Of a DNA stretch of 64,000 bases, positions 3,601 through 63,200 are shown piece by piece (the first letter of the stretch is position 1; each line of letters starts with the position of its first letter). The stretch is taken from assembly GCA_051530055.1 (NCBI GenBank), contig CM121342.1, forward strand, positions 2,266,797 through 2,330,796, given 5' to 3'. Below the pieces are notes generated by a model. That model was given only the letters and a program-made list of their open reading frames with translations. It made no database searches and had not been told where the DNA came from. A program made the translations under genes and the position numbers. This DNA comes from Neoechinorhynchus agilis (lineage: Eukaryota > Animalia > Acanthocephala).

Positions 3601-6238
3601 GCTTCTATATTGGTCACAAAAATTTTATTCACACAAAGAGAAAACCGGACATATCATGGATTCGAAGCATTCCGACGTTCAATTGATCTCAGGAAAATTC
3701 TTCAAACCGGAGCTGCTTATTCTGACACCTGATAACCCTGATGCCGAATAATGTTGGAATCACTGGCGGTACAAATTCGAATTATTTCTGAAGTGGTCAA
3801 ACATGTTTAGTGTGGAAGACAAGTTGGATCTCGTAAGAATATCAGTTTCTGCGCAGTTGTTCGACACCATACATTCGTGTTCATCCTACGGTGAAGTGAT
3901 GGAAATGCTTTCCAAGATGTTTCTGAAGCCCAAAAATGAGATTTTCTGCAGATACAAGGTGTATTCAGCGAAACAGGAAAATGGGCAGTCCGTGGCACAG
4001 TACATCGAGAATTTGGAAAACCTAGCCAGGAGATGCTCTTTTGCGAAACCTAACTGCCAGCCAAGCCAAGGATAGTCTCTTATGTGACGCCTTTATTTCT
4101 GGAGTTCGTTCTGACGTAATTCGTCAGCGAATCCTAGAAACGTTGTCAATGGATAAGGCTAAAGCGTTCGATACGGCCCTCACACTAGAAGCCTCTCATG
4201 AACAGGTCAATGACTACGTCGTCCAGAATAATGATGTGGTTGTGAACGTGGCAAAAATTGAAAAGGAGATCGAGTCTCACTTCTCTGATCCAAGGATCGA
4301 AACACTGTCGGTGTTGCACCACTCACGCAATAGCTCTCGTTTTTGTGGGGGAAGATTCACTCAAGAGAGAGATGTCCAGCTCGTAGCGTACAGTGCCATT
4401 TTTGCCATAAGTTGGGGCATTTCCAATCTGTTTGTGAGACTAAAAGAAGAAGCAAACTGCTCACTTCGAGCTGATATAATAAAAGGCTGACAGGCTCTGC
4501 GATACTTTCAAGTCTTCTGACTGAATCTAAAAGCCCTCTCAACGATTCCATTGTAAGAGCTAACATCCTGGGCATTGAGATCGAAGCACTACTTGGTAGT
4601 GGAAGTTCGAGTAATTTTATCAGCGCTGAACTTATTAACACTTTGAATGTGAAAACTGAGCACTGTCCTGTCAAAGTTGTTATGGCTAACGTCGACCACT
4701 CCACTGGAAGCAGTTCGCGGTGTTTCCTAGACATCAAGTTATTTGATAGGGACTATTGGAAGATCGAGTTCCACGTCTTGTCGAAGATTTGTTGTCCTGT
4801 AATTCTAGGGATACCTTTCCTGCGACTTGATTCAATGGTTTCTTTCAAACCAAATGAGATGGCAAGAAAGATCGAATTTGTCAATCAGCTCGATTGCATC
4901 GATTGTGAAACTCCTTCGCTTTTTTCTAACGATTCGACATCCTGGAACCCATTGACCACCCACTCGAGGAGACATCCGCAGCGGATTCGTAGCTTAATCA
5001 ACAAAGAAGTAAAGCGCATGCTAGACGAATAAATAATCGAACAAAGTCGGTATCCTTGGAGAGCAGCGTTTGGTGGTTGATTATTCGAGGACTGTTAATA
5101 GATACACTACCTTGGATGCCTATCCTCTGCCCCGAATAGATGAGATGATCGACATTATATCCAGTTACAAATCTTCAGTCACGTCGACATGAAGTCCACA
5201 TATCATCAGCTACGTTTAAAGGAAGAGGAGGAAGTCTTTACAGCTTTCGAAGCGAATGGACGACTTTACCAGTTTCGAAGAATCCCACTTGGTTTGGCAA
5301 AAGCAGTTGCTGTGTTCCAGAGGATTGTTGATGGCATTATTGAGAAGGAACAGCTGGATGGCACGTTTGATTATCTTGATGATGTTATCATTTTTGGCAG
5401 CGATCAAGCCGACCATGATAAAAAGCTCGCGAAATTTCAAGAGGTTGCTCGAAAATTAAGGATACGGTTAAACCCGTGTAAGAGCTTGTTTAATGTGCGG
5501 AAAATAAGGATTCTCGGTTATGAGGTTTGTAATGGAAAGAAACATCCAGATCCTGAGTGGTGGCTTTGGAAAAGCTCAGATTACCTGATTCGGAGAAGTC
5601 GTTGCGACGAGTTTGGGGATTGTTTGCTCACTGTGCAAAATGGGTGAAAAAAATTTCCACTCTTGTACGTCCTCTTGGACAGGTCGAGCGGTTCAACGGG
5701 ATAATCTGGAAAACGATTCGACTTGCACGGAAGGATAGATCGCTCGACATTTGCTATTGGGAAACAGTGCTCAGTGATGTACTCCAAGCAATTTGCTGCT
5801 TAGTGAGCACTGCCACTGGGGGGGGGTACGCCTCACGATAGGATATTTCGATATCAGAGAAAGCCGTTAATTAAATACCAAATGCCAGATCGGTTGTCGC
5901 CTGGAATTATCTAGGTTCGCAATTTCAATCTAACCAGCAAGAACGAGGATGCAGTCGAAGAGGCTTTATTAAAGACAGTCAATCCGCACGATGCCATGAT
6001 CGACTTGAAAGACTGAACTCAAAAGATCGTTTCCATTAAAGATTTGACCCGCCTCCCCATAAACAATGAGGAAGAGAGTGAAGTTCAGATCAACGATTGA
6101 AGCTAGTCTCAGGAGGGCGCTGAGATAGATTGTGAGAATGAAAACACCGCTGCGAACGAGGAAGTTACTGAAATTCTCCCGCGTCGAAGTTCTAGGATAA
6201 AGAAGAAGCCGGCGTATCTGAACGATTATGAGGAGGGA

Positions 6239-6639: not shown

Positions 6640-7225
6640 TAATGAAAGCCGAGAGGAAATGGACTTCATTTGTACGAAATTCATTACTTAAAGCTCGCGG
6701 GTATTCTCAAGAGGAAAAAAAACAAGAGACCAAATCAGGGATCTACAAAATTCCATGTGCAAAATGCTCAAGTGTTTACATTAGACAAACTATGCAAGGG
6801 ATCAAGAAACGGATCTCGCAGCATAAACAGGCTTGAAGGACTTTCGACAAATCCTCAACAATCTCGAACCATCAGCAAACAATCCAACACAAGGTGGATT
6901 TTGAAAAGGCGGCATTCTTATCCAGTAAACCGGATCCAAGAAGAAGACTGATCATTGAGGCCAATTACATCCGGGGAAATCCAACGATAGAAGGCAACAA
7001 ATCAAACCACACTCTGGTGCTATCGAAGTTGCGTAGCATGACGAACAGATTAGTCGGTAACAAACCGCAGGAGGTGTGTGCGACCCCACACTTCGGGTAT
7101 TAACAAAACCGCGGATCTGAGCTACATCCAGACGTGACCGGACGTGTGCATGCTGTCTATATCGTCTCCTTTTTAGATAGTGACTGAAGAGGCAAGGAAA
7201 ACCTTGTGAAATATTTCGCAATTAA
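6640..7225 (+). mobile_element. Penelope-like element 3' fragment (GIY-YIG endonuclease + pseudo-LTR)
   Basis: SGIYKIPCAKCSSVYIRQTMQGIKKRISQHKQA and DFEKAAFLSSKPDPRRRLIIEANYI are GIY-YIG motifs; ends in a hammerhead motif as is typical of PLE pLTRs. Confidence 0.7.
7176..7223 (+). ncRNA. Minimal type-I hammerhead ribozyme
   Basis: GATAGTGA-CTGAAGA-G-GCAAGG(AAAA)CCTTGT-GAAA-TA-TT-TCGCAATT: intact core, 6-bp stem II, palindromic stem III, stem I 4+3 bp. Confidence 0.65.
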
Positions 7226-10785: not shown

Positions 10786-11129
10786 GCCATCGATTGTATC
10801 GAACTCCTTGTTGTTACTGGATAAATGATAAGATTATTACTTAAACTTTAAACAAAATCTATCCGATTACCTAACGTTAATCGTTTGTTTATCCATCTCG
10901 GGCGAGTAGTCCTCTGTGCTACATTTTTGCGCTTCCATGTTGTAAAAAGGGACCAAAGGGGCTCCAAGAAATTCGCCTCAATGCCAAAGGCAATATCTTT
11001 TCTTGGGTGTTTTTAGCAAAACCCCACTAGAAGCCACCTCACGGCAGCGTCCAATAACATTCATTAACGTAGCTTGACGCGTATTGGTAAACATTTATGT
11101 AATAAATACCGATTAATACTTGTCAACGA

Positions 11130-11690
11130 AGCAATTAGGTAATTCCAATAATTTAATATAATTTTTGCAGAGTATCCTCGAGAATGTCTCCACAAAAAAT
11201 GGATGGAAAATGTAGAATCGACGAATCTGGGCATTTGTATTTCTCTCTTTTTTCGATCTTCCGCCTTTTCAACACTTCGTCGGTGGCTATTGGAACTGTC
11301 AACTCGGTAATTCCAACAATTTAATATGATTTTACAAAATATTCTCGAGAATGTCTCCGCAAAAAATGGTTCGAAAACGTAGAATCAACCAATCTGGGCA
11401 TTTGTAATTCTCTTTTTTTCGACCTTCCGCCCTTTTCGCCACTTCATCGGCGGCTCCTGGAACTGCAGGGGATAAGTCCTCGTTATCAATTAGGTAATTC
11501 CAATAATTTAATATGATTTTACAATGCATCCACGAGAATGTCTCCGCAAAAAATGGTTGGACAAATCTAAGCATTTGTATTTCTCCCTTTTTCGATCTTC
11601 CGCCATTTTTGCCACTTCATCGGCGGCTCTTGAAACTGCAAGGGACAAGTTCCGGTTATCAACTAGGCAATTCCAATAATTCAATATGAT
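11130..11690. repeat. Tandem array of 170-187-bp diverged units, apparently derived from a REL-endonuclease C-terminal segment
   Basis: AATTCCAATAATTTAATAT recurs at ~11139, 11309, 11496, 11668; minus strand reads PGAADEVAKRAEGRKKENYK..FVQPFFAETFSW, similar to CRE REL PGGAATAAEERKRTKY..FVPYGVETL at 16303-16785. Confidence 0.6.
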
Positions 11691-12270
11691 CGAGTTTTCC
11701 CTACGAGGGGTTCAGCTCGTTTTCTCTACAGGGCGAGCTTTTCCCTCTTCGAGATTTATTTGTAAACATGCAAATTTTCGAGGCCTCGACCTCCTTATCA
11801 AGCATATAAAATCACATGTAGTAGGGGAGCTCATTTGATCCCTGGACTCGTGTGAGCGGGGCCATCAATTTCCGAGGTGACGCTTCGCCCTGTGCGCTAC
11901 TGCTCCACGGAGCTTATTAGTTGGAAGGACAAGAGCAAAGTTACTCTTGTTGCCTTCAGTTGTCCTCTCCGCATTGATGAGAAGAACTTCCTTGATCAGA
12001 GCCTTCTTTGGAGCCCGTTCTCCACCATTTTCACCTTCGTTCCTCCGAAGTCGATTGTGTGGTCGATTTGCACGGCGAGGTTGAAGATGGCCGATGACAC
12101 ATCACTCCGTTTGAGTGCGTATTCATGCTGCCGATCTCTTTTCAAAATATCCTGCTTCGTTTGTCCAATATAGAGACATGGTCACAGTTTTTGTAGGGTT
12201 AAGGAGATTGAAGCCTCGAAAATTTGAATGTTTAGAAATCTCGAGGAGGAAAAAGTCGCCGTATAGAGAA
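11690..12270 (-). mobile_element. 5'-truncated Penelope-like insertion (GIY-YIG C-half, pLTR with hammerhead, inverted pLTR fragment at the other end); repeated at 12646-13226
   Basis: Minus strand LYIGQTKQDILKRDRQHEYALKRSDVSSAIFNLAVQIDHTIDF..RRL-IKEVLLI; plus-strand 12197-12270 is a degenerate inverted copy of the pLTR (AAGGAG..GCCTCGAAAATTTG.ATGTTTA.AAATCTCG). Confidence 0.7.
11766..11807 (-). ncRNA. Minimal type-I hammerhead ribozyme with U3-A8 covariant core (copy 1)
   Basis: Minus: ATATGC-TTGATAA-G-GAGGT(CGAG)GCCTC-GAAA-AT-TT-GCATGT; 6-bp stem I, 5-bp stem II, palindromic AAUU stem III. Confidence 0.65.
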
Positions 12271-12721
12271 AGTAATTTAATATGATTTTGAAATGTATCC
12301 ACGAGAATGTCTCCGCAAAAAATGGTTCGAAAACGTAGAATCAACCAATCTGGACATTTGTAATTCTCTTTTTTTCGACCTTCCGCCCTTTTCGCCACTT
12401 CATCGGCGGCTCCTGGAACTGCAGGGGACAAGTCCTCGTTATCAATTAGGTAATTCCAATAATTTAATATGATTTTACAATGCATCCACGAGAATGTCTC
12501 CGCAAAAAATGGTTGGACAAATCTAAGCATTTGTATTTCTCCCTTTTTCGATCTTCCGCCATTTTTGCCACTTCATCGGCGGCTCTTGAAACTGCAAGGG
12601 ACAAGTTCCGGTTATCAACTAGGCAATTCCAATAATTCAATATGATCGAGTTTTCCCTACGAGGGGTTCAGCTCGTTTTCTCTACAGGGCGAGCTTTTCC
12701 CTCTTCGAGATTTATTTGTAA

Positions 12722-12763
12722 ACATGCAAATTTTCGAGGCCTCGACCTCCTTATCAAGCATAT
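12722..12763 (-). ncRNA. Minimal type-I hammerhead ribozyme with U3-A8 covariant core (copy 2)
   Basis: Identical to 11766-11807, offset 956 bp. Confidence 0.65.
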
Positions 12764-14018
12764 AAAATCACATGTAGTAGGGGAGCTCATTTGATCCCTG
12801 GACTCGTGTGAGCGGGGCCATCAATTTCCGAGGTGACGCTTCGCCCTGTGCGCTACTGCTCCACGGAGCTTATTAGTTGGAAGGACAAGAGCAAAGTTAC
12901 TCTTGTTGCCTTCAGTTGTCCTCTCCGCATTGATGAGAAGAACTTCCTTGATCAGAGCCTTCTTTGGAGCCCGTTCTCCACCATTTTCACCTTCGTTCCT
13001 CCGAAGTCGATTGTGTGGTCGATTTGCACGGCGAGGTTGAAGATGGCCGATGACACATCACTCCGTTTGAGTGCGTATTCATGCTGCCGATCTCTTTTCA
13101 AAATATCCTGCTTCGTTTGTCCAATATAGAGACATGGTCACAGTTTTTGTAGGGTTAAGGAGATTGAAGCCTCGAAAATTTGAATGTTTAGAAATCTCGA
13201 GGAGGAAAAAGTCGCCGTATAGAGAAAGTAATTTAATATGATTTTGAAATGTATCCACGAGAATGTCTCCGCAAAAAATGGTTCGAAAACGTAGAATCAA
13301 CCAATCTGGACATTTGTAATTCTCTTTTTTTCGACCTTCCGCCCTTTTCGCCACTTCATCGGCGGCTCCTGGAACTGCAAGCGACAATTTGTTTCTGTTC
13401 CCAAGGAGACGGCGCCTTCTTTCTCATGGAAATTTAATGACGTAATTACGTAATTTGCATTTTTGAACGCGCGGTTGAGAGCAGAAAGCGTTTAATTCGA
13501 CACGTTCATCGCTTGATAACGAGCATACACAATCAATTCGTCACGTATTTTCGGTTATTACGGTGAGTCACGTGTTCGCGTCACGTTGGAACGTGTGAAT
13601 GTAAACACACAGGAAAACCTATCGTCGATTGGTTTCTTCAGAAGGCGTTTTCTGAACAACGTTTTCGCTGCATAGTGCGTACTCTGATCGTCTTGACTGC
13701 TCTTCGCTCACACGCAAAAAATCGAGCTGTTCAAGCCGTGATGACGTCGCCTTGAAAAATTACAGGAATCTGTCGATTGTATTAAAATCAGTTTCGATCG
13801 CCATGCTTTAGATTCTAACGCTACCTCGGGTTCTTTTCCTTTGATTTTAATTGAGATTTTATTAGGTTTAAATGGGTCTTTTTCTAACTGATTGGGTTCA
13901 TAATCACATACCTGGAAGAATAGATCGATCGATTTTAAAATTCTAATGTTCAAATAGGGCGTTATTCATAAAAAAAATTTAGGACTGCCTTTCGCACTTT
14001 TAGTTTTTTCTTTGTGAG

Positions 14019-15999
14019 ATGGCATTTCGTCACAGACCTCGTCATGGACGTAACCGCAACTACGATTACGACGACATGGAAGATGATGACCGGGGTGGTT
14101 GTCAAAATAATGGAAGACGCCGAGGATATCGTCAGCGGCTGGACTACTTTGTTCCAATGCGATTTGGATATCGACGTAACGACCGCGATTCTATGGACGA
14201 AGGATGGTTTCGTGCGGTTTTGCCTGGCGTCACAGCGGAAGATCTCTCAAAAAGTCAACTATGTTCAATGCTCAACGACCGTAGCAGTATTCCCATAACT
14301 GTGTATCACTATCAACAGGACGAAATGAGCAACCGAATCATATTTTTCATCAATAGTCGATCAGAAGCTCAGGAGATAAAAGCGATGAGTCGGCGATTCA
14401 GCGTTCAGAACCGGAACGTTCAGATATTTGTTAGCCGTGTGCCCGAACCGACGTTTGCTATGACCGATGAACTTCAAGATGTTCTACGTCGCTATTTGTC
14501 GTCTCGGTATAATGAAGACGCTTGTATTCTCTCACTTGCGTCAATATCACGAAACGAGAGTTTTCGTTCAGAAGGAATATATCTTAATCTAAGCCGCTCA
14601 AACGTCTTTGCTTCCCTTATGACCTTGTGTGAGGAATCTTTCCCAAACACTGTGATTCTTGATCTTAGTGGTAATGGTCTTTCCAGCCTGGATGTGCTGC
14701 GTGGACGTCTTCCTCATGTTAGTCGTCTCAATCTTGAACAAAACCGAATTCATCGACTTCGGGAACTCGATTATGTACGCCACATGCAACTCATTGAACT
14801 CTCCATTGGAGAAAATCCTCTATGCCGTCAATTCTCTAGTTTTGATGATTTAACAAGTGCCGTTAGAGACAAATGTCCTAAACTAAACATACTTAATGGA
14901 ACAAATCTCCCTCCTAGAATCGGATTCGCCATCGATGACGAACCCGTTACACTACCACAGTCAGTGTCGTTCAATGTTCCAGAAACATTCCGTGATGTTA
15001 TTGCTCAATTTATCAATGAGTATTTCCGATTCTTTGACTCTGGACGTGAAGAACGACAACCTCTAATGAACATCTACACTGACGACGCCGTTCTCTCATT
15101 TGCGGTCAATTGCGGATCAAGGTCTTTCAGGTTCGATCGGTACATTAAAGAAGGTAGAAACTTCATAAAAGTCGTAGAAGATCTCAGTAGACACGACCGG
15201 CTCAAACGTGGTCGATTCGATATTGTTTCGTTTTTTGTAAAGTTCCCAAAAACGACTCATGATCCAGAATCGTTGAAAGTTGACCTGTTCGCCTGCACTT
15301 CCGACCGTATTTCGTTCTCAATCACTGGCCTCTTTCTTGAAGAATCGTCAGAACTCTCTTCTGTCTCCGTCCCCGCCACCGCTGTTGGCGCTGCTGGTAA
15401 CGGTTCCTCGAATGAAAGGCCCAATTTAGTAAGGCAATTTTTCCGTGTGTTCCATTGTATGATCATGGACAAAGCTCAAAAGACTTTTAAAGTGTTCGTT
15501 GAACATTTCACTGTGTCTGAAGCAAGTCAAGCCCAAGTTAAGCAGGCTAAGTTTCCTGCACCCGCGACTCCTTTACCTTCGACCAATCAACAATTAACAG
15601 TTCAAACTTCGGTTTCAATAGCCATCAGTGGTTCCCTAAAAAAATGATGCACAACAACAGCCTTGCGCTGCTGGAATCTGTGTCAATGGTGGTGGTAGCT
15701 TCTTCTTTTTCCGCTTTAAAAATCCGTGTTCTTGACCATATATTTGGGTCAACGAAACAGTTTGTACTTTTTGAGGGGAACCACTGGTCGTAAATGACTC
15801 AATTGAACCGACTCCTATAGAAAAGGCGAAATTAGTGGAGAAAATAAGAAAGACTACTTCGCTGACCATGAGTTACGCTCACGAATGTCTACGAGCCAAC
15901 AAGTGGAATTTTGATACAGCACTCAAAAACTTTCTGGAACTTAAAGAAAACAAACAAATACCAGTCGATGCATACGATCCGACTTTGGCGGATCAGTAA
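14019..15999 (+). CDS. NXF1: Nuclear RNA export factor NXF1/TAP (RRM, LRR, NTF2-like, then TAP-C/UBA in a separate frame after a 161-bp insert)
   Basis: ORF 14019-15647 has Arg-rich N-terminus, WFRAVLP RRM, LDLSGNGL/LNLEQNRI LRR, FINEYFRFFDSG..KFPKTTHD NTF2; 15775-15999 encodes TAP-C (LTMSYAHECLRANKWNFDTALKNFLELKENKQIPVDAY). The join between them is uncertain. Confidence 0.88.
15626..15786. mobile_element. hAT-like MITE (161 bp) inside NXF1
   Basis: Terminal inverted repeats CAGTGGTTCCC(C)T.AAAAA at both ends; no clean TSD visible. Confidence 0.55.
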
Positions 16000-16302: not shown

Positions 16303-16785
16303 ATGCTACATTGTCCCCCCGGTGCCCTGAATACTGTGAATGCGTCCAACATCCTTGAGCCGAGCAATCTTTGCCGACTCTATGGCCGTAGACCGGACGG
16401 TGTCACAGTATTCTCGGGGCGAGGGGAGGCAAATGTCTTCTCTGGGACGCCATTCGCAGCCAGCAACATAAAATTCGCCACCATTAAACCAGGGGGAGCA
16501 GCAACCGCCGCTGAAGAACGCAAAAGGACAAAATACAGGAACCTGAGTCGAAATCATTATTTTGTTCCCTATGGCGTCGAGACACTCAGATCGTTTGTTA
16601 CCGCGGCGCAGGACCTGGTCAAGCAATTGTCTAAGAGACTGAGGCGAATATCTGGCGATCCGAGATCAGGAGCATTTCTCCTACAAAACATAAGTCTGGC
16701 TGTGCAACGAGGGAACGCTGCATCCGTCCTTTCGACTGTTACACCAGGACGGCAGCTGAGTGATCCAGAGCGGCGGCGTGAATGA
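16303..16785 (+). mobile_element. CRE-clade non-LTR retrotransposon 3' fragment (restriction-like endonuclease)
   Basis: LEPSNLCRLYGRRPDGVT..AAEERKRTKY..HYFVPYGVET..LLQNISLAVQRGNAASVL (PD..D/E.K REL). Confidence 0.75.
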
Positions 16786-23600: not shown

Positions 23601-23685
23601 AGCCGTGTAAGAGATGCTCACTTCAACACAGAATAAAGCTTTTTAGATGACTGATGAAGCTTCCTCTTTCGAAATATTTCTTAAC
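23601..23685 (+). repeat. ~85-bp dispersed repeat with hammerhead-like core lacking stem II (second copy 29919-30002, minus)
   Basis: AGCCGTGTAAG.GATGC.CACTTCA.CACAGAATAAAG.TTTTAGATGACTGA[T/A]GAAGCTTCCTCTTTCGAAATATTTCTTAAC in both copies. Confidence 0.7.
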
Positions 23686-23759: not shown

Positions 23760-24700
23760 AAAAAATTCACTAATTTATTTCCGATATTTCCAACATTTCC
23801 CTAAGGTTTGGTACGTTGTAATAACTTTCAAACAATGATAAACCTCGAGGAAATGTCGGAATTATCCGAGTGAATTTAAATCTGGGGTGTAGCAAAAGTA
23901 CCAAAAGAAGGTATCTTTTCTGCCGATTGGGCGATACTAAAACATAAACTGATATTCTTGTTGTGCGGATCAAACTAGTCCGCACAAAAAGTATATCTTT
24001 CCACCAGAATGTGATCTTGCATGAAATAAACTGATATCTGGATCAGCCACTCCGGTTCAATAATGATAATGTTCATATTCCGATATATATTTACAAATCA
24101 ATCACAGACTTCAGAAAGGAAATCCATCGATGTAGTCTCCTTACGATTTGTGGGATTAATATAACATTTGTTGTGTAAACTGCAAATAAATCCAAGACTG
24201 TCCAAACTTAGATAATCCTAAATTCTCCATGAGTAGCCAATCGAATTCCGAAATGATGTTTACAAATTTTCTCGATACCAAATAGGAAATATCTCATTAT
24301 ATTGTTGTTAATTTCAGATAATACGCCTGGACCAATATAAAAAGTAAGATATTTCAATTTCACTTAGCGATATTCACTCAGAAAATTGATTTATATTGAA
24401 AATTTTCGGCCTTTTCGTTGGCCTTCTTCAGTCAGATCTACAACTTAAAAGGAACGTTATCAATTAGTTTATCCGGTGGGACTCGTAGATTGAGTTTGTA
24501 GTCAGCTTTGTTGCCAACAAAAGTACCTGTTTGCTGGAATTTATTGATACTAAAAGACAACCTTCAACCCCTAAATTCTCGACTAAAAATGATATTTTTG
24601 ATGGAGCAAAAACATCATCCTTTCCCCTGTCAATAAAATTTTCAAATGCTAAATTAATTTTTTAAGTTAACGCGATTTTGCATATACATGAAAAGAAAAA
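23760..24700 (-). mobile_element. Heavily decayed CR1-type LINE RT remnant
   Basis: SLIRTTRISVYVLVSPNRQK..KFTRIIPTFPRGLS resembles CR1 RPHLEY..WSP..RFTRMIP.L.GLS; LAFENFIDRGKD..LGVEGCLL resembles DFSKAFD..GI.G.LL. Confidence 0.45.
24394..24436 (-). ncRNA. Minimal type-I hammerhead ribozyme
   Basis: Minus: ATCTGA-CTGAAGA-A-GGCC(AACGAAAA)GGCC-GAAA-AT-TT-TCAAT; intact core, 4-bp GC stem II, AAUU palindrome, 3-bp stem I (TGA/TCA) plus bulged extension. Confidence 0.6.
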
Positions 24701-29399: not shown

Positions 29400-29830
29400 C
29401 CGCAAAATTGGGGCTTCTCTCCTTCCTCGGCTGTCGCTATCACGCTAGCAGCATTGCCTCTGTACTGCGCGCGAGATATTTTGTCGTAGGAATACACCTT
29501 CTCGTGCGTAGGCGGTCTCTCAATTTATTCGAGAGATCCTGGAGCAGAGTGCCGAGCTGCCAAGCGCTCCATACGTCTCTACTCCGAAGGGGACAAAATA
29601 ATGGGCCCTTGCTAATTCTCTATATTTTCGTACCTTCCTCCCTTCCGCTGCAACTCCAGCGATTTTGAGAAAGTACCGAATGTTGCTCACTGCGAGGGAG
29701 TCCACACACGTGACGACCTGGAGAAGGCATTTGCCCTCCCACCACGGAAAGAGCGAAATTCCGTCAGGTCGACGACCGTCTAGTCGACAAAGATGGGCGG
29801 GTTCCAAGATGTTGGCGTGAGAACCTTCCT
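29400..29830 (-). mobile_element. CRE-clade REL endonuclease fragment
   Basis: LEPAHLCRLDGRRPDGISLFPWWEGKCLLQVVTCVDSLA..HYFVPFGVETYG..FLRQNISRAVQR. Confidence 0.75.
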
Positions 29831-30045
29831 CCTGACTTTCGGCAAACGAGACCGTGTCACCCGAAAGCATCAACCAAAGACGGGAGACCAAGTGACAATA
29901 GATAATTTCGTTTTCATGGTTAAGAAATATTTCGAAAGAGGAAGCTTCTTCAGTCATCTAAAAACTTTATTCTGTGCTGAAGTGTGCATCCCTTACACGG
30001 CTTGGGCACATCCCTCCGGATCCTCAGATACCTCCCGAGGAGGTG

Positions 30046-38222: not shown

Positions 38223-38398
38223 TTTTTTATAGTGAATTATAATAATTTATTTGATAATTTTCGGCTTTCGCGTAGGCCTTTTTCAGTCTATTGCTATTGT
38301 AGGTTTTCAAAAATGTGTGAGTTCGTCTAAGAAGGTCTTCGCATAGGCCGAAAATTATCAAACAAAAATTAATCAATCATTATAATTCGCTATAAAAA
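38223..38398. repeat. Inverted repeat with degenerate hammerhead-like core in both arms (same family as 24394-24436)
   Basis: TTTTTATAGTGAATTATAAT pairs with ATTATAATTCGCTATAAAAA; left arm minus GACTGAAAA-A-GGC..GCC-GAAA-AT-TA-TCAA; right arm CTAAGAA-GGTC..GGCC-GAAA-AT-TA-TCAA. Confidence 0.65.
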
Positions 38399-46428: not shown

Positions 46429-46978
46429 ATGTATCATTCTTATCTTCACCGTGCTCCTTTCTTTTCTGCTCTATGCATTCTCAGTCACTTGTGGTCGAGC
46501 CTCAAACCAAAATGCTTTGAAAACGGAACTGAAAATGGAATACTTAAAAAAGCATTCGAACCAGGAAGCCCCAGGGGCAAATTCTAAAACTACAATGCCA
46601 ACAGATCCGTCCTCGTACCTTCAAAGTGTAATAAATACGACGGCTGTAGAGGACGTTCCAGTTCGCGATGATGTGCTCCGATATTTCAATGGGATTTTTG
46701 GAAACCTTCTTAATCTGATAAAGTTAAACGAAGGATGTTATTGCAACGATATCAGGATGGAGACAATCATTAAGCTTCTAAAAACAAGGGATAAACTATA
46801 CGAAAAATATACGAAAATAGGAAAGCCGCCAAAGCATCTACCGGATAAACATGTTCTCGAAATAGCCAAATGCTTCGATCCATACATTGAGTGCCTTGCC
46901 AAAATGGATCGCATGGGATTTCAGTTTATGATGATGATGTTTGACCGGTTCAAAAATGTCGTAAATCGTAAAATTTAG
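46429..46978 (+). pseudogene. Secreted orphan protein, copy A, +1 frameshift in codon 4
   Basis: ATGTATCATTCTTATC versus ATGTATCATTTTATC in copies B and C; downstream frame is identical in amino acids to copy B. Confidence 0.75.
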
Positions 46979-50489: not shown

Positions 50490-51740
50490 GCATGAAATCA
50501 CTTACACCGCCGCTCTGAATCAGCTGCCGTCCTGGTGTAACGGCCGAAAGGACGGATGTAGTGTTCCTTTGCAATGCACAGTCAGACTTATGTTTTGTAG
50601 GAGGAATGCTCCTGATCTCGGATCGCCAGTGATTCGCCACAGTCTCTTGGACGCCATATTCATCACTAAAACCTCGCATTTCGCAGCATTTAATTCAATG
50701 CAAATTTCCACCGTCTCTTTCACGAGTGTCTCCAAATCGCGCAGTACTACGGAGGGGTTAGCTCCGATCGTGGCATCGTCAAGTTACCAGCCATTAAAAA
50801 TGGACTGGAGAGAGTGCGCGAAGGAATTGACTGCGAGATAGAAGGCTATTGGGCCCAGATGGTACTCTTGTTGAACTCCTCTTTCTGACCATAAAACGTG
50901 ATTATTGAACAACAAGGGAGTTGCAGTCCAATGAAGCATTAACGAAATAGCGAAATGCTTCTGGTGCGTGTTCTCCAACTACTTCAAGCAAATCTGCTCG
51001 GTGAACTGAGTTGAATGCATTTCTGAAATCACATTTCAAGATCACGCACGGCTTTGAGTTTCCGGCGATGAACGTGCGAAGTTAATGAACAATCGCCTCT
51101 GCGCCACAAGGTCTACAGCAGCCTAACTGAGTATAGCGGAGCAGCATCCCTACATTTTCCGCGATCCTTTTATTTAAGAATTTTGCCGTTAAGCGGCTTA
51201 GAGTTGTTCCAATTGCAATGGGACACATCCCACCTTCCTTTTCTTGCGAGGGCACACAAAGCTGTGCCGAAAAATAACTCAATTGCTTTCGGAATCTACT
51301 CTCACCCTACAAATTAATCGACTAGGCATGCCAATGCACCTTCAAGAGACTGAGAAGCGTCATCTGCTGAAAACGAAGTCATATCTTTTTGGTGTTTTTG
51401 CCGCAGCCCGTCAAGTTCGTGAGCTGATCCGTTGGCAAAAGAATAGATCGCCATCTTCAATTCCGATTTCGATGATAAAACATAAGGGTTTGAAATACAA
51501 GTGACCGCCGTCACAGGGAAGTTTGGAACGAAGAGCTCGTAAAGTTTCTTTGTTATCTTTTGGCGAGACTGTATATTAATGATAAAAGACGGACTGCTAC
51601 TCTGACATCTCCGTCTGCGAGCTTCGAAGAAACGCGTCCATCCAGCGACCGATTTGAGTTTCGGCGGTAGTCAGGCGCTGGCACACTCCCTAAGTAGCTC
51701 GAATGCTCTCGTAAAGCATTGAGTAAAACTTTCGTCAAAA
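50490..51740 (-). mobile_element. CRE-clade retrotransposon, internally deleted (RT joined to REL C-terminus and 3' end)
   Basis: EGGMCPIAIGTTLSRLTAK..QLGCCRPCGAEAIVH; LNAAKCEVL joined to KRLWRITGDPRSGAFLLQNISL, nearly identical to 16303-16785. Confidence 0.75.
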
Positions 51741-53090: not shown

Positions 53091-53639
53091 CTAAATTTTA
53101 CGATTTACGACATTTTTGAACCGGTCAAACATCATCATCATAAACTGAAATCCCATGCGATCCATTTTGGCAAGGCACTCAATGTATGGATCGAAGCATT
53201 TGGCTATTTCGAGAACATGTTTATCCGGTAGATGCTTTGGCGGCTTTCCTATTTTCGTATATTTTTCGTATAGTTTATCCCTTGTTTTTAGAAGCTTAAT
53301 GATTGTCTCCATCCTGATATCGTTGCAATAACATCCTTCGTTTAACTTTATCAGATTAAGAAGGTTTCCAAAAATCCCATTGAAATATCGGAGCACATCA
53401 TCGCGAACTGGAACGTCCTCTACAGCCGTCGTATTTATTACACTTTGAAGGTACGAGGACGGATCTGTTGGCATTGTAGTCTTAGAATTTGCCCCTGGGG
53501 CTTCCTGGTTCGAATGCTTTTTTAAGTATTCCATTTTCAGTTCCGTTTTCAAAGCATTTTGGTTTGAGGCTCGACCACAAGTGACTGAGAATGCATAGAG
53601 CAGAAAAGAAAGGAGCACGGTGAAGATAAAATGATACAT
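53091..53639 (-). CDS. Secreted orphan protein, copy B (182 aa from ATG, intronless, signal peptide, 4 Cys in mature part)
   Basis: Intact ORF MYHFIFTVLLSFLLYAFSVTCG-RASNQ..; hydrophobic N-terminus; GCYC and CFDPYIEC. Confidence 0.8.
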   Translation of the reverse strand: MYHFIFTVLLSFLLYAFSVTCGRASNQNALKTELKMEYLKKHSNQEAPGANSKTTMPTDPSSYLQSVINTTAVEDVPVRDDVLRYFNGIFGNLLNLIKLNEGCYCNDIRMETIIKLLKTRDKLYEKYTKIGKPPKHLPDKHVLEIAKCFDPYIECLAKMDRMGFQFMMMMFDRFKNVVNRKI

Positions 53640-54349
53640 CAATAAATTCCTTGGTATAATGTTTTCTAGTATATAATTTGGAGATGTTAAATAGTTCGAA
53701 GATTGTGTACTAGCAACTAAAAGATATATTGACTATAAACAAACTTAGTTTCCTATGGCAAATATAATTTTGTAAACATCGAGTGAACGAAAATACACTG
53801 TGAATAAATAAAATGTGGACCTAATTTGTTTAACAAAAATATTCGAATGAGGCATTTTGATTTTTAGAGCATAGTTTAAACTTTATCAATATTTTTAAAA
53901 ATACTCGAAGAGAATTTATCCAAAAAAATTCTTGTGACACAAAAACAGTTGATAATATTCTCTAATATTCATTTTACGGGCATTTGTTCAAACCCAGATA
54001 TCTTAGTTTCAAAGGGATTTGATATCTCTTAGCATAATATCGAAAAAGCGTAAATAAAACGAAAGTAAAAAGTTTTCAAGATCAAAGCTATCTTTGCGCC
54101 CGAGCGGATTTTATGGTCCAAAAAAAGAATGCATAATAATCCCGCTAATATGATTTTCACTTTTGAGATTTCACATTTTGTTTATTAACAGTGTATTTTC
54201 GTTCACTCGATGTTTACAGAATTATATTTGCCATAGGAAACTAAGTTTGTTTATAGTCAATATATCTTTTAGTTGCTAGTACACAATCTTCGAACTATTT
54301 AACATCTCCAAATTATATACTAGAAAACATTATACCAAGGAATTTATTG

Positions 54350-54898
54350 ATGTATCATTTTATCTTCACCGTGCTCCTTTCTTTTCTGCTCTATGCATTC
54401 TCAGTCACTTGTGGTCGAGCCTCAAACCAAAATGCTTTGAAAACGGAACTGAAAATGGAATACTTAAAAAAGCATTCGAACCAGGAAGCCCCAGGGGCAA
54501 ATTCTAAAACTACAATGGCAACAGATCCGTCCTCGTACCTTCAAAGTGTAATAAATACGACGGCTGTAGAGGACGTTCCAGTTCGCGATGATGTGCTCCG
54601 ATATTTCAATGGGATTTTTGGAAACCTTCTTAATCTGATAAAGTTAAACGAAGGATGTTATTGCAACGATATCAGGATGGAGACAATCATTAAGCTTCTA
54701 AAAACTAGGGATAAACTATACGAAAAATATACGAAAATAGGAAAGCCGCCAAAGCATCTACCGGATAAACATGTTCTCGAAATAGCCAAATGCTTCGATC
54801 CATACATTGAGTGCCTTTCCAAAATGGATCGCATGGGATTTCAGTTTATGATGATGATGTTTGACCGGTTCAAAAATGTCGTAAATCGTAAAATTTAG
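54350..54898 (+). CDS. Secreted orphan protein, copy C (182 aa; differs from B by P>A and A>S)
   Basis: Intact ORF; head-to-head with copy B; upstream TATATA-like box conserved in all copies. Confidence 0.8.
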   Translation: MYHFIFTVLLSFLLYAFSVTCGRASNQNALKTELKMEYLKKHSNQEAPGANSKTTMATDPSSYLQSVINTTAVEDVPVRDDVLRYFNGIFGNLLNLIKLNEGCYCNDIRMETIIKLLKTRDKLYEKYTKIGKPPKHLPDKHVLEIAKCFDPYIECLSKMDRMGFQFMMMMFDRFKNVVNRKI

Positions 54899-57200: not shown

Positions 57201-60200
57201 TGTGATGTCATAGGGTGTTAGTTAGTCTTCCGTGCTTTGCTGAATTATTTAAACATGTTTTGAGGCGATGGTAGATTACTAATTGGTGACTCCGACGATG
57301 TTGACCGTAGTTCAGCACCTGAAACAACTCGATAAAGCCACGTAAATGCTGTTTTGCCCAAACTTCCTCAGGTTTGGACACGAAAACCGCGAATTTGGTT
57401 TGTCCAAGCTGATGCTCAATTTGCTTTACGGAGCATAACACCGGACGAAACAAAGTATTATTATGTTACAGCATCACTCGGTCAAGACAGCTGTAAGAAT
57501 TATCGATATTCTCGAAGCGCCACCAAAGTCTGATAAGTACTCCCAACTCAAACAGCGACTGCTAAAAGCCTACAGTTTATCTGAGAACGAAAGGGCTAAT
57601 CGGATCCTACACATAAAGGAACTTACAGGCGAAAAGCCTTCGGAATTAATGAATCAGATGCTAGCGTACCTCGAAAGCAACCCACCATGTTTCTCATTCC
57701 GGGAAATATCTTCGGAACCCACGCCCGAGGAGATCCGATCTATTCTTGTTCATTCAAAAATAACCGAACTTCGTGAGCTTGCACGCGCTGCCGACAACAT
57801 TTGGCAAACAAGGCAACTTTTAGCGTCCTCAATTAAGAAAAAGATTGCGACCAAGCAAATCCCAGTAACAGTATCAGATTTATGTTATTTCCATCGTAAG
57901 TTTGGTGACATAGCCAGGAAATGTCGATCACTCTGTAAACGGTCCCAGGAGTTCAATTGGAAGGCGAATCCAAAAAACGCGTTGACCAATCATCCGTAGA
58001 GGCGATGGTGATCGGTCCCTCTATCAACAACCTGTTCTTTATCAACGAATGTTTATCCGGGCGACGTTTCCTAATTGATACCGGTACCGAAGTCAACGCC
58101 CTTCCGGCTTCATCGCGCGATAAGAGAACCGGACACTGACGTGTATAGTTTTTATACGTTATCCGAATCTCTCAAAGACCTGTTAGAAATAACGGATGCA
58201 TACGAGAGTCCGAAAGAGGCATTAAAGATCATGCCGAAGATAAAAAGGAAAGATCAATCAGACCCAGAAGTGTTGAAGGTTAGTACTTGGAGGCACAAAG
58301 GGCGGCAGATGGAGAGGAGCAACAGCGACGAACAAGGCAAGTCTGCGACAATATTCATCAAGGCCTGTCTACACTGTGACCGAAAGCACAATGATGTTTC
58401 GAGGTGCCGAGCCAAGACAATGATGTGCTACAAATGCAACAGAGTTGGTCATTTGTCACGTTGCTGTAAGACCTTTCGAATGGTTCAACAGATAATTGGA
58501 CAGGATTCGAGCGACGATGAAGCGATTGTGCGATGCATTAGAACCGTAAAGAGAAAAAAAAGCGGAAATTCGCGTGAAAATCAACGGGATCCTGATCTCT
58601 ATGGAATTCGATACAGGAGCTGCTGAGTCCATCATTACCCGAAATATATGGGCGAAGCTGGGAAAGCCAAAATTAGGAGAAGCTCCTTCAATCAGAGCGT
58701 TTGGTGGCACAAAGATTGATACTCTTGGGTCATGCAATGTGCAGGTGACGCTAGCTAATCGAACGGAAACGCTCAACGTCATTGTGATCTCGGGCGTAGA
58801 AAGGCCAATCTTCGGATTACTTTGGATGCTCAAATTCGATTTAACGATTCCTGCAGCACGGATTGTTGATGTCCACAAAATACGAGAAACGAACGAAACG
58901 GAGGATCTATCCGATGCGAAGAAAATCGAGGCTTTGATGAGGAACGAATTCGAGACGGTATTCGATGGAGAACCGGGGGCAGTAACAAATTTCGAAGTAA
59001 GCCTGTCGGCCATTAAGAACAAGAAGGTACGATGTGGAAGGCTAGAAGGGTGCCTTTCGCTCTCTATGAACCTCTAGAGAGAGTCGGAGCGATTGGTCTC
59101 GAATGGTATTCTAATCTCAGTGGACGTGACAAAGCAGGATCTCAAGTGGGCGACGCCCATCGTAGTCGTACGAAAACCGAACGGGAAAGTAAGGGTCTGC
59201 GGAGACTTTAGAGTCACGCTGAACAAATTTATGAAAGTAGATTCCTTACAAATACCCGCATTTGAGGAGGTGACCCAGAAGTTAGTCAAATCTAAATTCT
59301 ATAGCACAATCGACCTCCGAGACGCATATCTCCAACTACCGATGGACAGTGAATCTAGTAAGATGCTCACGGTCGCAACCCCGATGGAGCACTTTAGATA
59401 TACTCGATTGCCTCTGGGGATCTCCGCTGCACCTGCAATCTTCCAGAAATACATAAATGGCTTATTGCAAGATATCACAAATGCGGCTGCATATTTGGAT
59501 GATATTTTGGTTGCAACCGAAACGGCAGACGAACATTTAAAATGCTTTAGGAGCGTTTTCCATCGTTTATGTGTCGCAGGATTGAAGGTACATGGAGATA
59601 AATGCGTCTTCATGAGCCGGAAGATCCGGCATTTGGGGCATATGATTTCTGAAGACCAGATTATTCCTTTGGACGAAAAAACCTGAGCACTAACATGCGC
59701 TTCGCCTCAAAATAATCCAAGGGAACTAAGGGCGTACTTGGGATTGGCCAATTTTCTCGCTCGATATTACCCGAACTTCCAACAATATTGCGCTCCTCTG
59801 CACGAACTTACGAGAACGAGTGTCGAATAAAAATGGACCGCAATCGAAGAAGATGCGTTCAGGTGTCTACAAAAACAATTACGAAAACCCAGGGGATTGA
59901 CACCGTTCGATCGAGCAAAAGAAATAGCTTTAACATATGATGACAGTGAAGTTGGTCTCGGAGCAGTCTTGATGCATAGAACCGAAGCAGGCGAATTCCT
60001 TCCGATCTCATTCGCTTCGCGTGTACTCACCAAAGCTGAGAAAAATTACTTCCAGATTGAGAAGGAAGCCCTGGCTCTTGTTTACGGTGTCACAAAGTTT
60101 CACGACTATCTGTATGGAATGACGTTCACACTCTTCTCAGATCACAAACCCTTGAAGTTCATCTTCGGCCGGGATCGAGTGTTGTCGAAAGTAGTAAACT

Positions 60201-63200
60201 CAAGAATTATCCGGTGGGCACTTCAGTTATCATGCTATGAGTACGAGATTGAATACATCCTGGAAGTCAGAATCACTACGCCTATATCTTGTCCAGGATG
60301 CCCATGCTAAGTGAAGACGATTTGATGAATTCCACAGAAGGCGATGTTGGGAAGTGTTTCGATTGCCAAGCCAACCGACCCGAGGAACGAGAAATGCCGC
60401 TTTTCTCATGGGAACAGCCGAGGAACCCTGGAAAAGAATTCATATGGATTTTGCGGGGCCAATCAATGGGTTCGTGTATCTCATCGTGGTTGCGCGTGCT
60501 CAAAGTGGCCGGAAGTTTGGATGAGACCAACGTTTAGTTCAAAAAGCACTATCCAATGCCTGAGAGAAGCGTTCGCACGTTGGGGGTTACCGGAACGAAT
60601 AGTTTCTGACAACGGGCCACAATTCGCGTCAATCGAATTCGCCGAGTTCTGCAGCAGAAACAAAATTGTTCACTGTCGAACATCGTTTTACCATCCTCGG
60701 ACGAATGGGCTAGCAGAGCGGTTCGTAGCGAAGTTGAATGGCAAAGCGGGTAAAGGGGAGGAGAGCTTGCAAAAGTTTTTGCTATCATACAGAAACTGCA
60801 TTCACTCGTTGACCGGAAAAGCGCCTTCACAGATGCTGCAGGGCAGACGACTCTCAACTCTATTCGATAATCTAAAACCGAATCCAGTCAAAACGGAATG
60901 AAGGAAGCGGGTAGAAGAGAGAAGACTTCACGATGCAAAGGCAAGGCAGTTTGAAGATTTCCAATTAGGTGGTTCAGTGTGGCATCGAGACAGACGAAAT
61001 GAACAGTGGGTTCCCGCAACCACTCTATTGAGGAATGGCCCTTTATCTTATCACGTGGACACAAGTTCGGGAATGAAGAAGGCTCACACGGATCAGCTGA
61101 GACTACGAACGACCGAAGCACAAGACGATTTGTAAGGTCTAGATAACCAGTTGAGCGATTCAACCAAGAAAGACTCAGAACAATATGGATCGCTTAATGT
61201 CTCAATCAAAAACGAACCTAAAACCGATGAGACTGAGAACAACCAGAAGGGCGAAGACGAGCGGGCGAACGAAGAATTTCATAGCAACGAAGCCACTAAT
61301 GAACCCGCGATTCGAGATCCAGAAACAGAGGCGAAGGAAATGTTTCACAAAACGATGTGACGTTGCACGTAATGGGTTAGGTGTTGGACGCTTTGCGTTA
61401 GGTGTTTTTGGAATATTTAAAACATGTCAGACACCAATCCAGATCACTGTCAGCAGCTAACGGTTCATCAATTCCGACATTCGGCAGTAAACTACTGCAA
61501 TTGCATCTGAGTGAAACCCAGACAGTTAAGCACCCTATCCAAGGCGCCGATTTCCAACGATATTCAGGTTTATTAGTTGACGTCAGGAATAAACAACTGT
61601 TCAATGCCGAAAGGTTCGCAACAACACCATAAACTTCCCTTCCTGTATCGATCGAAGCCCTCCGTGTCGATTTCCTCGGATCGAAAAGCAACGAATTCAG
61701 TAAAATTCTCGCAGAATTCTTCGATATAACGAGACCGACATTTTTCGGATGCTTCGACCAAATATGCAGTAGAAGATTTTATTGAGACACAAGGACCACC
61801 ACTTCACACTAGGTCTCGTCGTCTACCACTCAATGATCCCGCTGTTACCAAGTCTGAGTTTAAGAACATGGAGGACCTTGGAATCATTAGACGCTCCAAT
61901 AGCCAGTGGTCACCTTCGTTACATCTCGCACCCAAATCGAGTGGTGGATGGCGACCTTGCGGTGACTACCGGAGGTTGAACGATGTCACGATTCCAGGCA
62001 GATACCAGATATCTAGGATACAAGATATTTTAGCCAAACTCGCTGGAGCAATGATCTTCTCAAAAGTCGACTTCGTCCGAAGGTATCATCAAATTCGAGT
62101 GGTAGAACAGGACGTCCCAAAAACTGTGATTATTACGCCTTTTGGCCTTTTTGAATTTCTTAGGATGCCGTTCGAGTTGAAAAATGATGCTAAAAAATTC
62201 CAACGTTTGATGGATACTGTTTGCCCAGGTATGGATTTTGAGTTCGTTTACTTGGACGGTATAACTAATCGATCCGAACATACCAATCATCTACGAACAT
62301 CGTTCAATCGACTTTCAGAATATGGACACGTTCTCAATCTGGTAGAGCAGGTCGATTTCCTGGGACACCGTGTCAATGGACAGGGTACAATACCATTGTC
62401 AGAAAAAAATGAACGTGATTCGCAGTTTCCCTCCTCCAACATCCACCAAAGCTTTGCAAAAATTTGTTGGTATGGTAAATTATTATCATCACTTTATCCC
62501 TCTGGCAGCCCGACCGATGCGTCCAATGTTTCAAGCACTTTCTGTTAAAACAGATCGACAAACTTTTTTTTGGACAGCTGATATTACTTCAGCACTCGAA
62601 AACACCAACAGTGCTCTAGCAGAGGCAACGATGCTTGCACACCCAGTCAATGGTGCTGCAATATCTATCAGTACCGACGCATCCGAATTTGCTATTGGTG
62701 CTGTTCTACAGTAAAAGGTGTCAAGTCAATGGCAGGCTCTGGCATTCTTTAGCAAACAATTACGTAAACCCGAACAGCGTTACAGAATCTTCGATCGCGA
62801 ACTTCTGGCGATATATTTCGCTGTCCGACATTTTCGATATTTCGTTGAAGGTCGACCATTTACGATATACACCGACCATCATTGACCTTTGATTTATGCG
62901 ATGTCCAAAGTTTCAGATCCGAGGTCAGCTCGCCAACAGCGCCATTTAACTTACATATCTGAATTCACAACGAGTATCGAACACGTTAGCTGAAAAGAAA
63001 ACCAAGTTGCTCACGCATTATCTCGCATACAATCTGATCAAAATATCCAGGCATATCGATCGGCAAATACCTCGTTACAGCTTAAAGAAATTCATTTCAG
63101 TGATACAGGACGAACCATCTTGTGCGATATATTGACTGGTCGTTGTAGACCATTGGTACAATCATCGTGGACGAAACGAGTTTTTGATTCTGTGCACCAA

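Follow-up and report, generated by a model that had tools for sequence, protein, structure and literature searches.

A probable Penelope-like element relic with a U3-A8 minimal hammerhead, duplicated within a satellite array of Neoechinorhynchus agilis

A 956-bp tandem repeat of the acanthocephalan Neoechinorhynchus agilis, each unit of which carries a hammerhead motif with U3-A8 in place of the C3-G8 core pair, raises the question of whether the repeat is a retrozyme, propagated through RNA, or a relic that was copied as DNA. It lies in a 64,000-nt stretch (the window; GenBank assembly GCA_051530055.1, contig CM121342.1, positions 2,266,797 to 2,330,796 of the forward strand) of a 16.4-Mb chromosome in a compact metazoan genome, together with genes of the Src-type kinase, NXF and BTB families. 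The array is intergenic, flanked on one side by a BTB gene on the minus strand that ends at ~10938 and on the other by an NXF gene on the plus strand that starts at 14019. A preliminary description of this DNA had proposed a retrozyme-like architecture and had taken the double change in the core for a sign of selection on cleavage. The account that we consider probable is that a dead, truncated fragment of a Penelope-like element (PLE) was inserted into an array of satellite repeats, here called D1, and was later duplicated with it, the U3-A8 hammerhead that it carries being genuine.

A minimal hammerhead beside a decayed endonuclease

The 42-nt minus-strand motif, ATATGCTTGATAAGGAGGTCGAGGCCTCGAAAATTTGCATGT, is present exactly twice, once in each unit as previously described (Table 1), and was found 0 times in 100 shuffles. 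Read as a hammerhead, it has a helix I of 6 bp between AUAUGC and GCAUGU, with one G-U among the pairs, followed by the core nucleotides U3 U4 G5 A6 U7 A8 A9 (U3 being 11801 and A8 11796 in the first copy) and by an unpaired G at 11794. Helix II comprises 5 bp between GAGGU and GCCUC, including the G10.1-C11.1 pair (G11793 with C11780), and is closed by the loop CGAG, which a U-G pair adjoins. The 3′ box runs G12 A13 A14, then A15.1 A15.2 U16.2 U16.1 (AAUU, palindromic at 15.2-16.2 and without a loop 3) and U17. All of the core boxes of a hammerhead (UUGAUAA, GAA, A15.1/U16.1 and U17) are in place, and positions 3 and 8 can pair. The minimum free energy (MFE) fold of the motif within 76 nt of context contains helices I and II as parsed, with a z-score of only -1.5; parse and fold together bear out the full stems and compensated core of the preliminary description.

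The window was searched with a descriptor for minimal hammerheads that accepted any base at positions 3 and 8, 0-1 unpaired nucleotides after A9, a helix II of at least 4 bp, GAAA, pairable positions 15.2 and 16.2, U16.1, H17, a helix I of at least 3 bp and a loop 3 of 0-6 nt. Neither the G10.1-C11.1 pair nor a 0-nt loop 3 nor the unpaired nucleotide was demanded. Four hits at three independent loci were returned, all of them C3-G8 or U3-A8 and none with non-pairing bases at 3 and 8, and the duplicated motif is the sole U3-A8 locus among the three. The expectation per 64 kb of composition-matched random sequence is 0.005 hits for the C-G combination, 0.02 for U-A and 0.04 for the 14 other combinations at these positions. 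The hallmarks of PLE minimal hammerheads, namely a nucleotide between A9 and 10.1, a palindromic 15.2-16.2, the lack of loop 3 and the G10.1-C11.1 pair, are present in the motif without having been forced by the descriptor.

The motif lies ~60 nt downstream of a GIY-YIG endonuclease remnant. Minus-strand positions 12181-11868 encode ..CLYIGQTKQDILKRDRQHEYALKRSDVSSAIFN..IDF.. and, past a frameshift, ..KKALIKEVLLI..NKSNFALVLP... Pfam alone gives a weak GIY-YIG match to this remnant (E = 0.095), and a word-indexed protein search with it found no match. An exhaustive phmmer search of 1.84 billion representatives returned six matches, the best of which, P0002, has E = 3e-7 and 56% identity; the matched proteins show the PLE-type GIY-YIG pattern and stand at or near the Pfam GIY-YIG threshold. 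A profile search reached 283 proteins, many of them with RVT_1 and PF26215, and a metagenome scan with a three-sequence alignment (A4) produced three loci, all bacterial or phage-type GIY-YIG genes with no hammerhead. From the phmmer and profile results, the fragment is therefore the decayed C-terminal part, from YIG onward, of a PLE endonuclease.

Relatives of this endonuclease carry hammerheads in the corresponding place. The gene for P0002, found on two marine-metagenome contigs (L002 and L003), is followed ~50 nt past its stop by CUGAAGA-g-GACC(cuuagu)GGUC-GAAA-AGCU-C, which has the same architecture, unpaired G included, but C3-G8 in its core. In loci L004, L005, L010 and L012 the stop of the endonuclease is followed, 146-204 nt on, by a minimal hammerhead, and an inverted hammerhead copy upstream of the open reading frame (ORF) is found as well at L004, L010 and L012. 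Relative to the nearest homologues, the core at 11766-11807 differs solely by the double change at 3 and 8 and at the free position 7. Because position, orientation and architecture all agree, the motif is placed among the PLE minimal hammerheads. Judged by its sequence, it is a genuine minimal type-I hammerhead of the Penelope class, with predicted self-cleavage, and its earlier description as such, next to a GIY-YIG fragment, was accurate.

Anatomy and history of the duplicated insertion

Self-comparison of the window shows that 11346-12423 recurs at an offset of 956 bp with identity at all but two positions (11398 and 11473). Similarity decays at ~11320-11345 and ~13380-13390, giving ~2.13 copies, and the 956-bp tandem repeat previously noted at 11346-13380 is confirmed with these two mismatches. 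Tandem Repeats Finder, whose longest period is 500, reports for this reason the inner 167-bp period alone. The D1 family is represented in the window by six copies of 167-173 bp. Read on the minus strand, D1 repeats weakly recall a portion of two PD-(D/E)xK-like ORFs (16303-16785 and 29520-29957). A tblastn search of the array with these ORFs, in a database of 2.5 kb, yielded E = 0.003-0.15, which lends weak support to the proposal that the repeats are REL-derived. BLAST found no similarity between D1 repeats and the hammerhead arm. Hammerheads hidden within the D1 repeats, each of which has TTGATAAC on the minus strand, were considered and rejected, as neither a helix II nor GAAA comes after it.

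The 956-bp unit is made up of two D1 repeats plus a 582-bp insert, and the flanks, once joined across the insert, align without gaps to uninterrupted D1 junctions. The direct copy within the insert contains the endonuclease remnant, the 3′ untranslated region and the hammerhead. The 77-bp arm that abuts it is inverted and 5′-truncated, and its core box 1 has been destroyed by a 3-nt deletion (..GGGTTAAGG..). Compound PLE insertions are known to combine partial tandem or inverted 5′-truncated copies with a tail of 30-40 bp and, close to the 3′ end, a hammerhead (Craig et al., 2021, PMC8557442), and the insert has this anatomy, with an inverted arm, a 30-nt tail, a 14-bp target-site duplication (TSD) and a hammerhead near its 3′ end.

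Since both units share the same junctions and TSDs, a single insertion is indicated, with the block duplicated afterwards along with its D1 DNA. The D1 copy at 11132-11317, outside the 956-bp unit, is more diverged, as expected if the D1 array predates the duplication. The 956-bp period is best explained by duplication at the DNA level and not by rolling-circle reverse transcription, with D1 repeats most likely having recombined unequally or slipped against one another.

Table 1. Features of the array and of other hammerhead loci in the window (strand as + or -; a point where the feature has none).
Feature	Position	Strand	Remarks
Whole array, higher-order tandem repeat	11318-13387	.	period 956 bp, ~2.1 copies; near-identical over 11346-13380
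D1 satellite repeats, 167-173 bp	11132-11690	.	copies starting at ~11132/11150, 11318 and 11491
D1 satellite, further copies	12274-12646; 13230-13387	.	
PLE insertion, copy 1, 582 bp	11691-12272	-	inverted truncated arm, direct 5′-truncated 3′ end and tail
PLE insertion, copy 2	12647-13228	-	100% identical to copy 1, identical junctions
TSD, left, 14 bp, TAATTCAATATGAT	11677-11690	.	unit 2: 12633-12646
TSD, right, TAATTTAATATGAT	12273-12286	.	unit 2: 13229-13242
Inverted 5′-truncated arm	12200-12271	+	82% identical to the reverse complement of 11721-11797; unit 2: 13156-13227
Tail extension, 30 nt	11691-11720	-	closes the direct copy and is lacking in the inverted arm; unit 2: 12647-12676
C-terminal PLE-type GIY-YIG endonuclease remnant	11868-12181	-	from ..CLYIGQT..; frameshift near 12014, in-frame stops; unit 2: 12824-13137
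Minimal type-I hammerhead, U3-A8 core, copy 1	11766-11807	-	descriptor hit; predicted cleavage after U17, between 11772 and 11771
Minimal type-I hammerhead, U3-A8 core, copy 2	12722-12763	-	descriptor hit; predicted cleavage between 12728 and 12727
Second PLE endonuclease remnant, different family	6735-7058	+	SGIYKIPCAKCSSVYIRQT...NKSNHTLVLSKL; one in-frame stop; 45-50% amino-acid identity
Intact C3-G8 minimal hammerhead after the 6735-7058 remnant	7180-7219	+	descriptor hit; gugaCUGAAGAg-GCAAGG-aaaa-CCUUGU-GAA-AUAU-U
Minimal hammerhead, intact C3-G8, no adjacent endonuclease	24397-24434	-	descriptor hit; covariance model R1: 26.5 bits, E = 2.7e-5
Decayed minimal hammerhead, no adjacent endonuclease	38251-38290	-	uncompensated C3-A8 and a helix II mismatch; related to 24397-24434

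The following history would account for these features. A 5′-truncated PLE would have entered, in one event, an array of ~170-bp D1 repeats that already stood between the BTB and NXF genes, and the compound form, with its inverted truncated arm, direct truncated copy, 30-nt tail and 14-bp TSD, would have resulted from that event. The direct copy would have retained the last ~100 GIY-YIG codons, now frameshifted, along with a 3′ untranslated region carrying a minimal type-I hammerhead, as in the pseudo-long-terminal repeats (pseudo-LTRs) of canonical EN+ PLEs; in this PLE lineage C3-G8 appears to have been replaced by U3-A8, most likely already in the source element. Two D1 repeats and the insertion, 956 bp in all, would then have been duplicated in tandem through D1 recombination or replication slippage. 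The hammerhead of an active PLE is presumed to act as a dimer, or with the aid of a protein, in processing long or tandem PLE transcripts, and the one at this locus most likely persists as a passenger relic.

Inheritance, decay or amplification through RNA

Several observations weigh against this account. Rfam hammerhead models gave no match in the window as a whole at gathering thresholds, and relaxing the cutoff to E ≤ 10 over 11000-13800 brought up noise only (Plastid-rpl20, SNORD62 and ar15) and no hammerhead. Model R1, a covariance model derived from eight C3-G8 hammerheads of external PLEs, recovers the other hammerheads of the window and leaves the U3-A8 motif unreported at E ≤ 10. The earlier remark that a strict CUGANGA search misses the motif therefore holds for Rfam as well. 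These misses lower the claim only a little, because the models penalise U3 and A8 and a missing or AU-only helix III. The 582-bp insert, being 5′-truncated, includes no reverse transcriptase, so that it is assigned to PLEs on the strength of its endonuclease remnant, its hammerhead and its insertion structure. The mismatches among the three D1b-type copies fall in a pattern with no clean crossover point, and the U3-A8 family was examined through one independent copy, too few to show conservation at the family level in this genome.

The silence of Rfam and R1, the fold z-score of -1.5 and three departures from the strict hammerhead consensus would also suit a chance hammerhead-like string unrelated to ribozymes, but this is extremely unlikely given a descriptor expectation of at most 0.02 per 64 kb and a place on the same strand as a PLE endonuclease remnant and ~60 nt past it, the site at which the hammerhead is found in every relative. 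The motif shares an upstream UUUUAnAU context with other hammerheads of the window, and its three departures from the consensus are all published traits of PLE minimal hammerheads (PMC4209133). It is unlikely, too, that U3-A8 reflects neutral decay of C3-G8 after the insertion, with two independent transitions that happened to restore pairing and nothing selected. Both changes are indeed transitions in a copy that is dead (a frameshift and stops), and other hammerhead copies do drift, the one at 38251-38290 to C3-A8, one at L004 to A3-G8 and the one at L013 with the loss of core box 1; yet here all other core positions and both helices are intact, and two changes among 13 core positions would fall exactly at 3 and 8, with the pair restored, in ~0.5-2% of cases (our own estimate and not the result of a tool). 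The diverged inverted arm, moreover, seems to share A8 and probably U3: its ..TTAA.. stands opposite UUGAUAA of the direct arm, an ambiguous alignment that fits U3, U4, A8 and A9 having been common to both before their 18% divergence. In Schistosoma mansoni, U3-A8 families of ~1,300 members exist (PMC4209133). An inherited compensated state is favoured by the intactness of both helices and of the remaining core, by the apparent agreement of the inverted arm and by precedent in the literature, and U3-A8 was most likely inherited from the source element. Selection on cleavage, as the preliminary description had it, is not inferable at a 5′-truncated, frameshifted dead copy representing one independent member of its family.

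Non-LTR retrozymes are tandem repeats with type-I hammerheads that derive from PLE pseudo-LTRs, with consensus lengths of 51-972 bp (bioRxiv 10.64898/2026.07.22.740005). An active or nascent retrozyme at this locus would fold a double hammerhead in minus-strand transcripts over both units and release a 956-nt RNA with 5′-OH and 2′,3′-cyclic phosphate ends, which would be circularised and possibly reverse-transcribed by PLE machinery, the tandem being a product of that cycle or a substrate for it. Two consecutive same-strand units with complete type-I hammerheads are present, as the published definition demands (bioRxiv 10.64898/2026.07.22.740005), provided that the descriptor accepts U3-A8; the length of 956 nt falls inside the published range, contrary to the earlier statement that the unit is much longer than typical retrozymes; and the core is otherwise intact, with its 3-8 pair compensated. 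This reading is nevertheless very unlikely, as the unit is made up of a TSD-flanked insertion and host D1, with extra D1 outside it, so that the first duplication had to be a DNA event, and no other copy of the unit, as would mark it as itself mobile, was found in the 64-kb window. The retrozyme-like architecture proposed before thus stands formally as regards its two units, while their composite nature points to local DNA duplication.

Predicted folding also speaks against release of such an RNA. When the insert is folded as minus-strand RNA, the inverted arm is predicted to pair with the hammerhead region in a long imperfect duplex of ~75 nt (MFE -213.7 kcal/mol, z -8.5). The arm would be the first of the two to be transcribed, and pairing with it is predicted to use up helices I and II and so sequester the hammerhead. 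Helix III is only AAUU, and by nearest-neighbour energies the double-hammerhead conformation would be 5.6 kcal/mol less stable than two inactive monomers, as against 1.5 kcal/mol for a relative with an ACGU helix III. Published minimal hammerheads cleave weakly in vitro, as dimers or trimers (PMC4209133), and that of the Anolis Poseidon element cleaved only with the protein of the element and was dispensable for insertion in vitro (PMC11167929). There is a very slim likelihood that the locus is a retrozyme at birth, in which the 3′ end of a dead PLE, duplicated by chance with a satellite, could release and circularise a chimeric RNA of ~956 nt. If true, this would show the origin of non-LTR retrozymes from PLE pseudo-LTRs and would mean that a U3-A8 core supports the cycle in vivo.

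Other loci of the window and known systems

The window holds at least three intact PLE-type minimal hammerheads and several decayed ones (Table 1). Two near-identical hammerhead-like strings, at 29922-29957 (minus strand) and 23647-23682 (plus strand), read UUUUUAGAUGA-CUGA[A/U]GA-AG..CGAAAUAUUUCUU and contain both core boxes with no helix II; the former overlaps the ATG of ORF 29520-29957, and the latter lies ~750 bp from the opposite-strand hammerhead at 24397. A third and badly decayed GIY-YIG remnant (..RRIKELKYAMRRGTNASSAILNNF..) is found at ~1440-1720 on the minus strand, followed downstream by UUGAUAU-GCAC(gcaug)GUGC with no GAAA box, just before a gag-like ORF at 907-1278. On the same chromosome, ~190 kb upstream of the window, positions 4001-5100 of locus L013 encode a PLE endonuclease model (P0003) that is 45% identical to the remnant in the array; the end of its ORF is intact, and the hammerhead downstream is without core box 1 (UUUUAGAUGA-UAAACAU..GUCGAAAUUAUCGC).

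The remaining features of the window concern other elements and genes. ORFs at 16303-16785 (plus strand), 29520-29957 (minus strand) and ~50521-50651 (minus strand) share the pattern ..RRPDG..(F/L)(F/S)..WD-like..AE.RK..KY..yFVP.GVET.G; they have no Pfam hit and possibly represent a PD-(D/E)xK or REL-type endonuclease of another retroelement. Near-identical ORFs of ~183 aa with a hydrophobic, signal-peptide-like start occur at 46451-46978 (plus strand), 53091-53642 (minus strand) and 54347-54898 (plus strand), a local gene triplication with one copy inverted. LTR-type retrotransposon fragments with gag-like, protease, reverse transcriptase, RNase H and integrase regions, interrupted by stops and frameshifts, are found at 907-1278, 4041-5647 and 57463-62548.

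The replacement of C3-G8 by U3-A8 is not new. Natural covariation of this kind in hammerheads was reported in 2011, together with a note that in vitro activity of such cores had been demonstrated before (Perreault et al., 2011, PMC3088659), and the minimal hammerheads of PLE pseudo-LTRs were described in 2014 with U3-A8 among them, found through the Cercyon PLEs of S. mansoni, where it accounts for ~1,300 hits (Cervera and de la Pena, 2014, PMC4209133). Every feature of the motif is already in this literature, and U3-A8 is a known variant. The compensatory replacement is the same as in the covariants of Perreault et al. (2011), whose hammerheads have a stable helix III, whereas the motif at this locus is of the minimal, dimer-dependent type. 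With the minimal hammerheads of S. mansoni PLEs it shares the type I form without loop 3, the palindromic 15.2-16.2, an unpaired nucleotide between A9 and G10.1, the G10.1-C11.1 pair, U3-A8 itself, a location in the 3′ region or pseudo-LTR of a PLE, residence in a truncated element, as for most copies there, and a second copy on the opposite strand 100-700 bp away. It differs in its host genome (GCA_051530055.1), in being seen as one independent U3-A8 copy and in a helix II of 5 bp, compared with 7-8 bp in the commonest S. mansoni families. Its helix III is AU-only (AAUU) with U17, whereas relatives from other assemblies have ACGU or AGCU and, for the most part, C17.

Like metazoan non-LTR retrozymes, the array has tandem units that each carry a type-I hammerhead of PLE origin, without coding capacity and within 51-972 bp. 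Unlike them, it has only ~2.1 units, built as a composite of satellite and TSD-flanked PLE, with no dispersed copies seen in the 64-kb window and with a hammerhead predicted to be masked by the inverted arm. The insertion resembles the PLEs of Craig et al. (2021) in that an inverted 5′-truncated copy abuts a direct 5′-truncated one, only one end bears a tail (30 nt) and the hammerhead lies close to the 3′ end. It is set apart by extreme truncation, to ~75 bp and ~500 bp with no reverse transcriptase left, and by a tandem arrangement that reflects later duplication of flanking DNA as well, as opposed to a partial PLE-PLE tandem.

The locus opens no new mechanism, and its value lies first in annotation, since PLE-type minimal hammerheads in this genome escape both strict CUGANGA descriptors and every hammerhead model of Rfam. 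U3-A8 hammerheads of PLEs had been documented for S. mansoni, and their occurrence in a second animal lineage adds comparative support for the 3-8 pair. The presence of U3-A8 beside C3-G8 paralogues in one genome provides a natural pair of cores for gauging the activity of the covariant.

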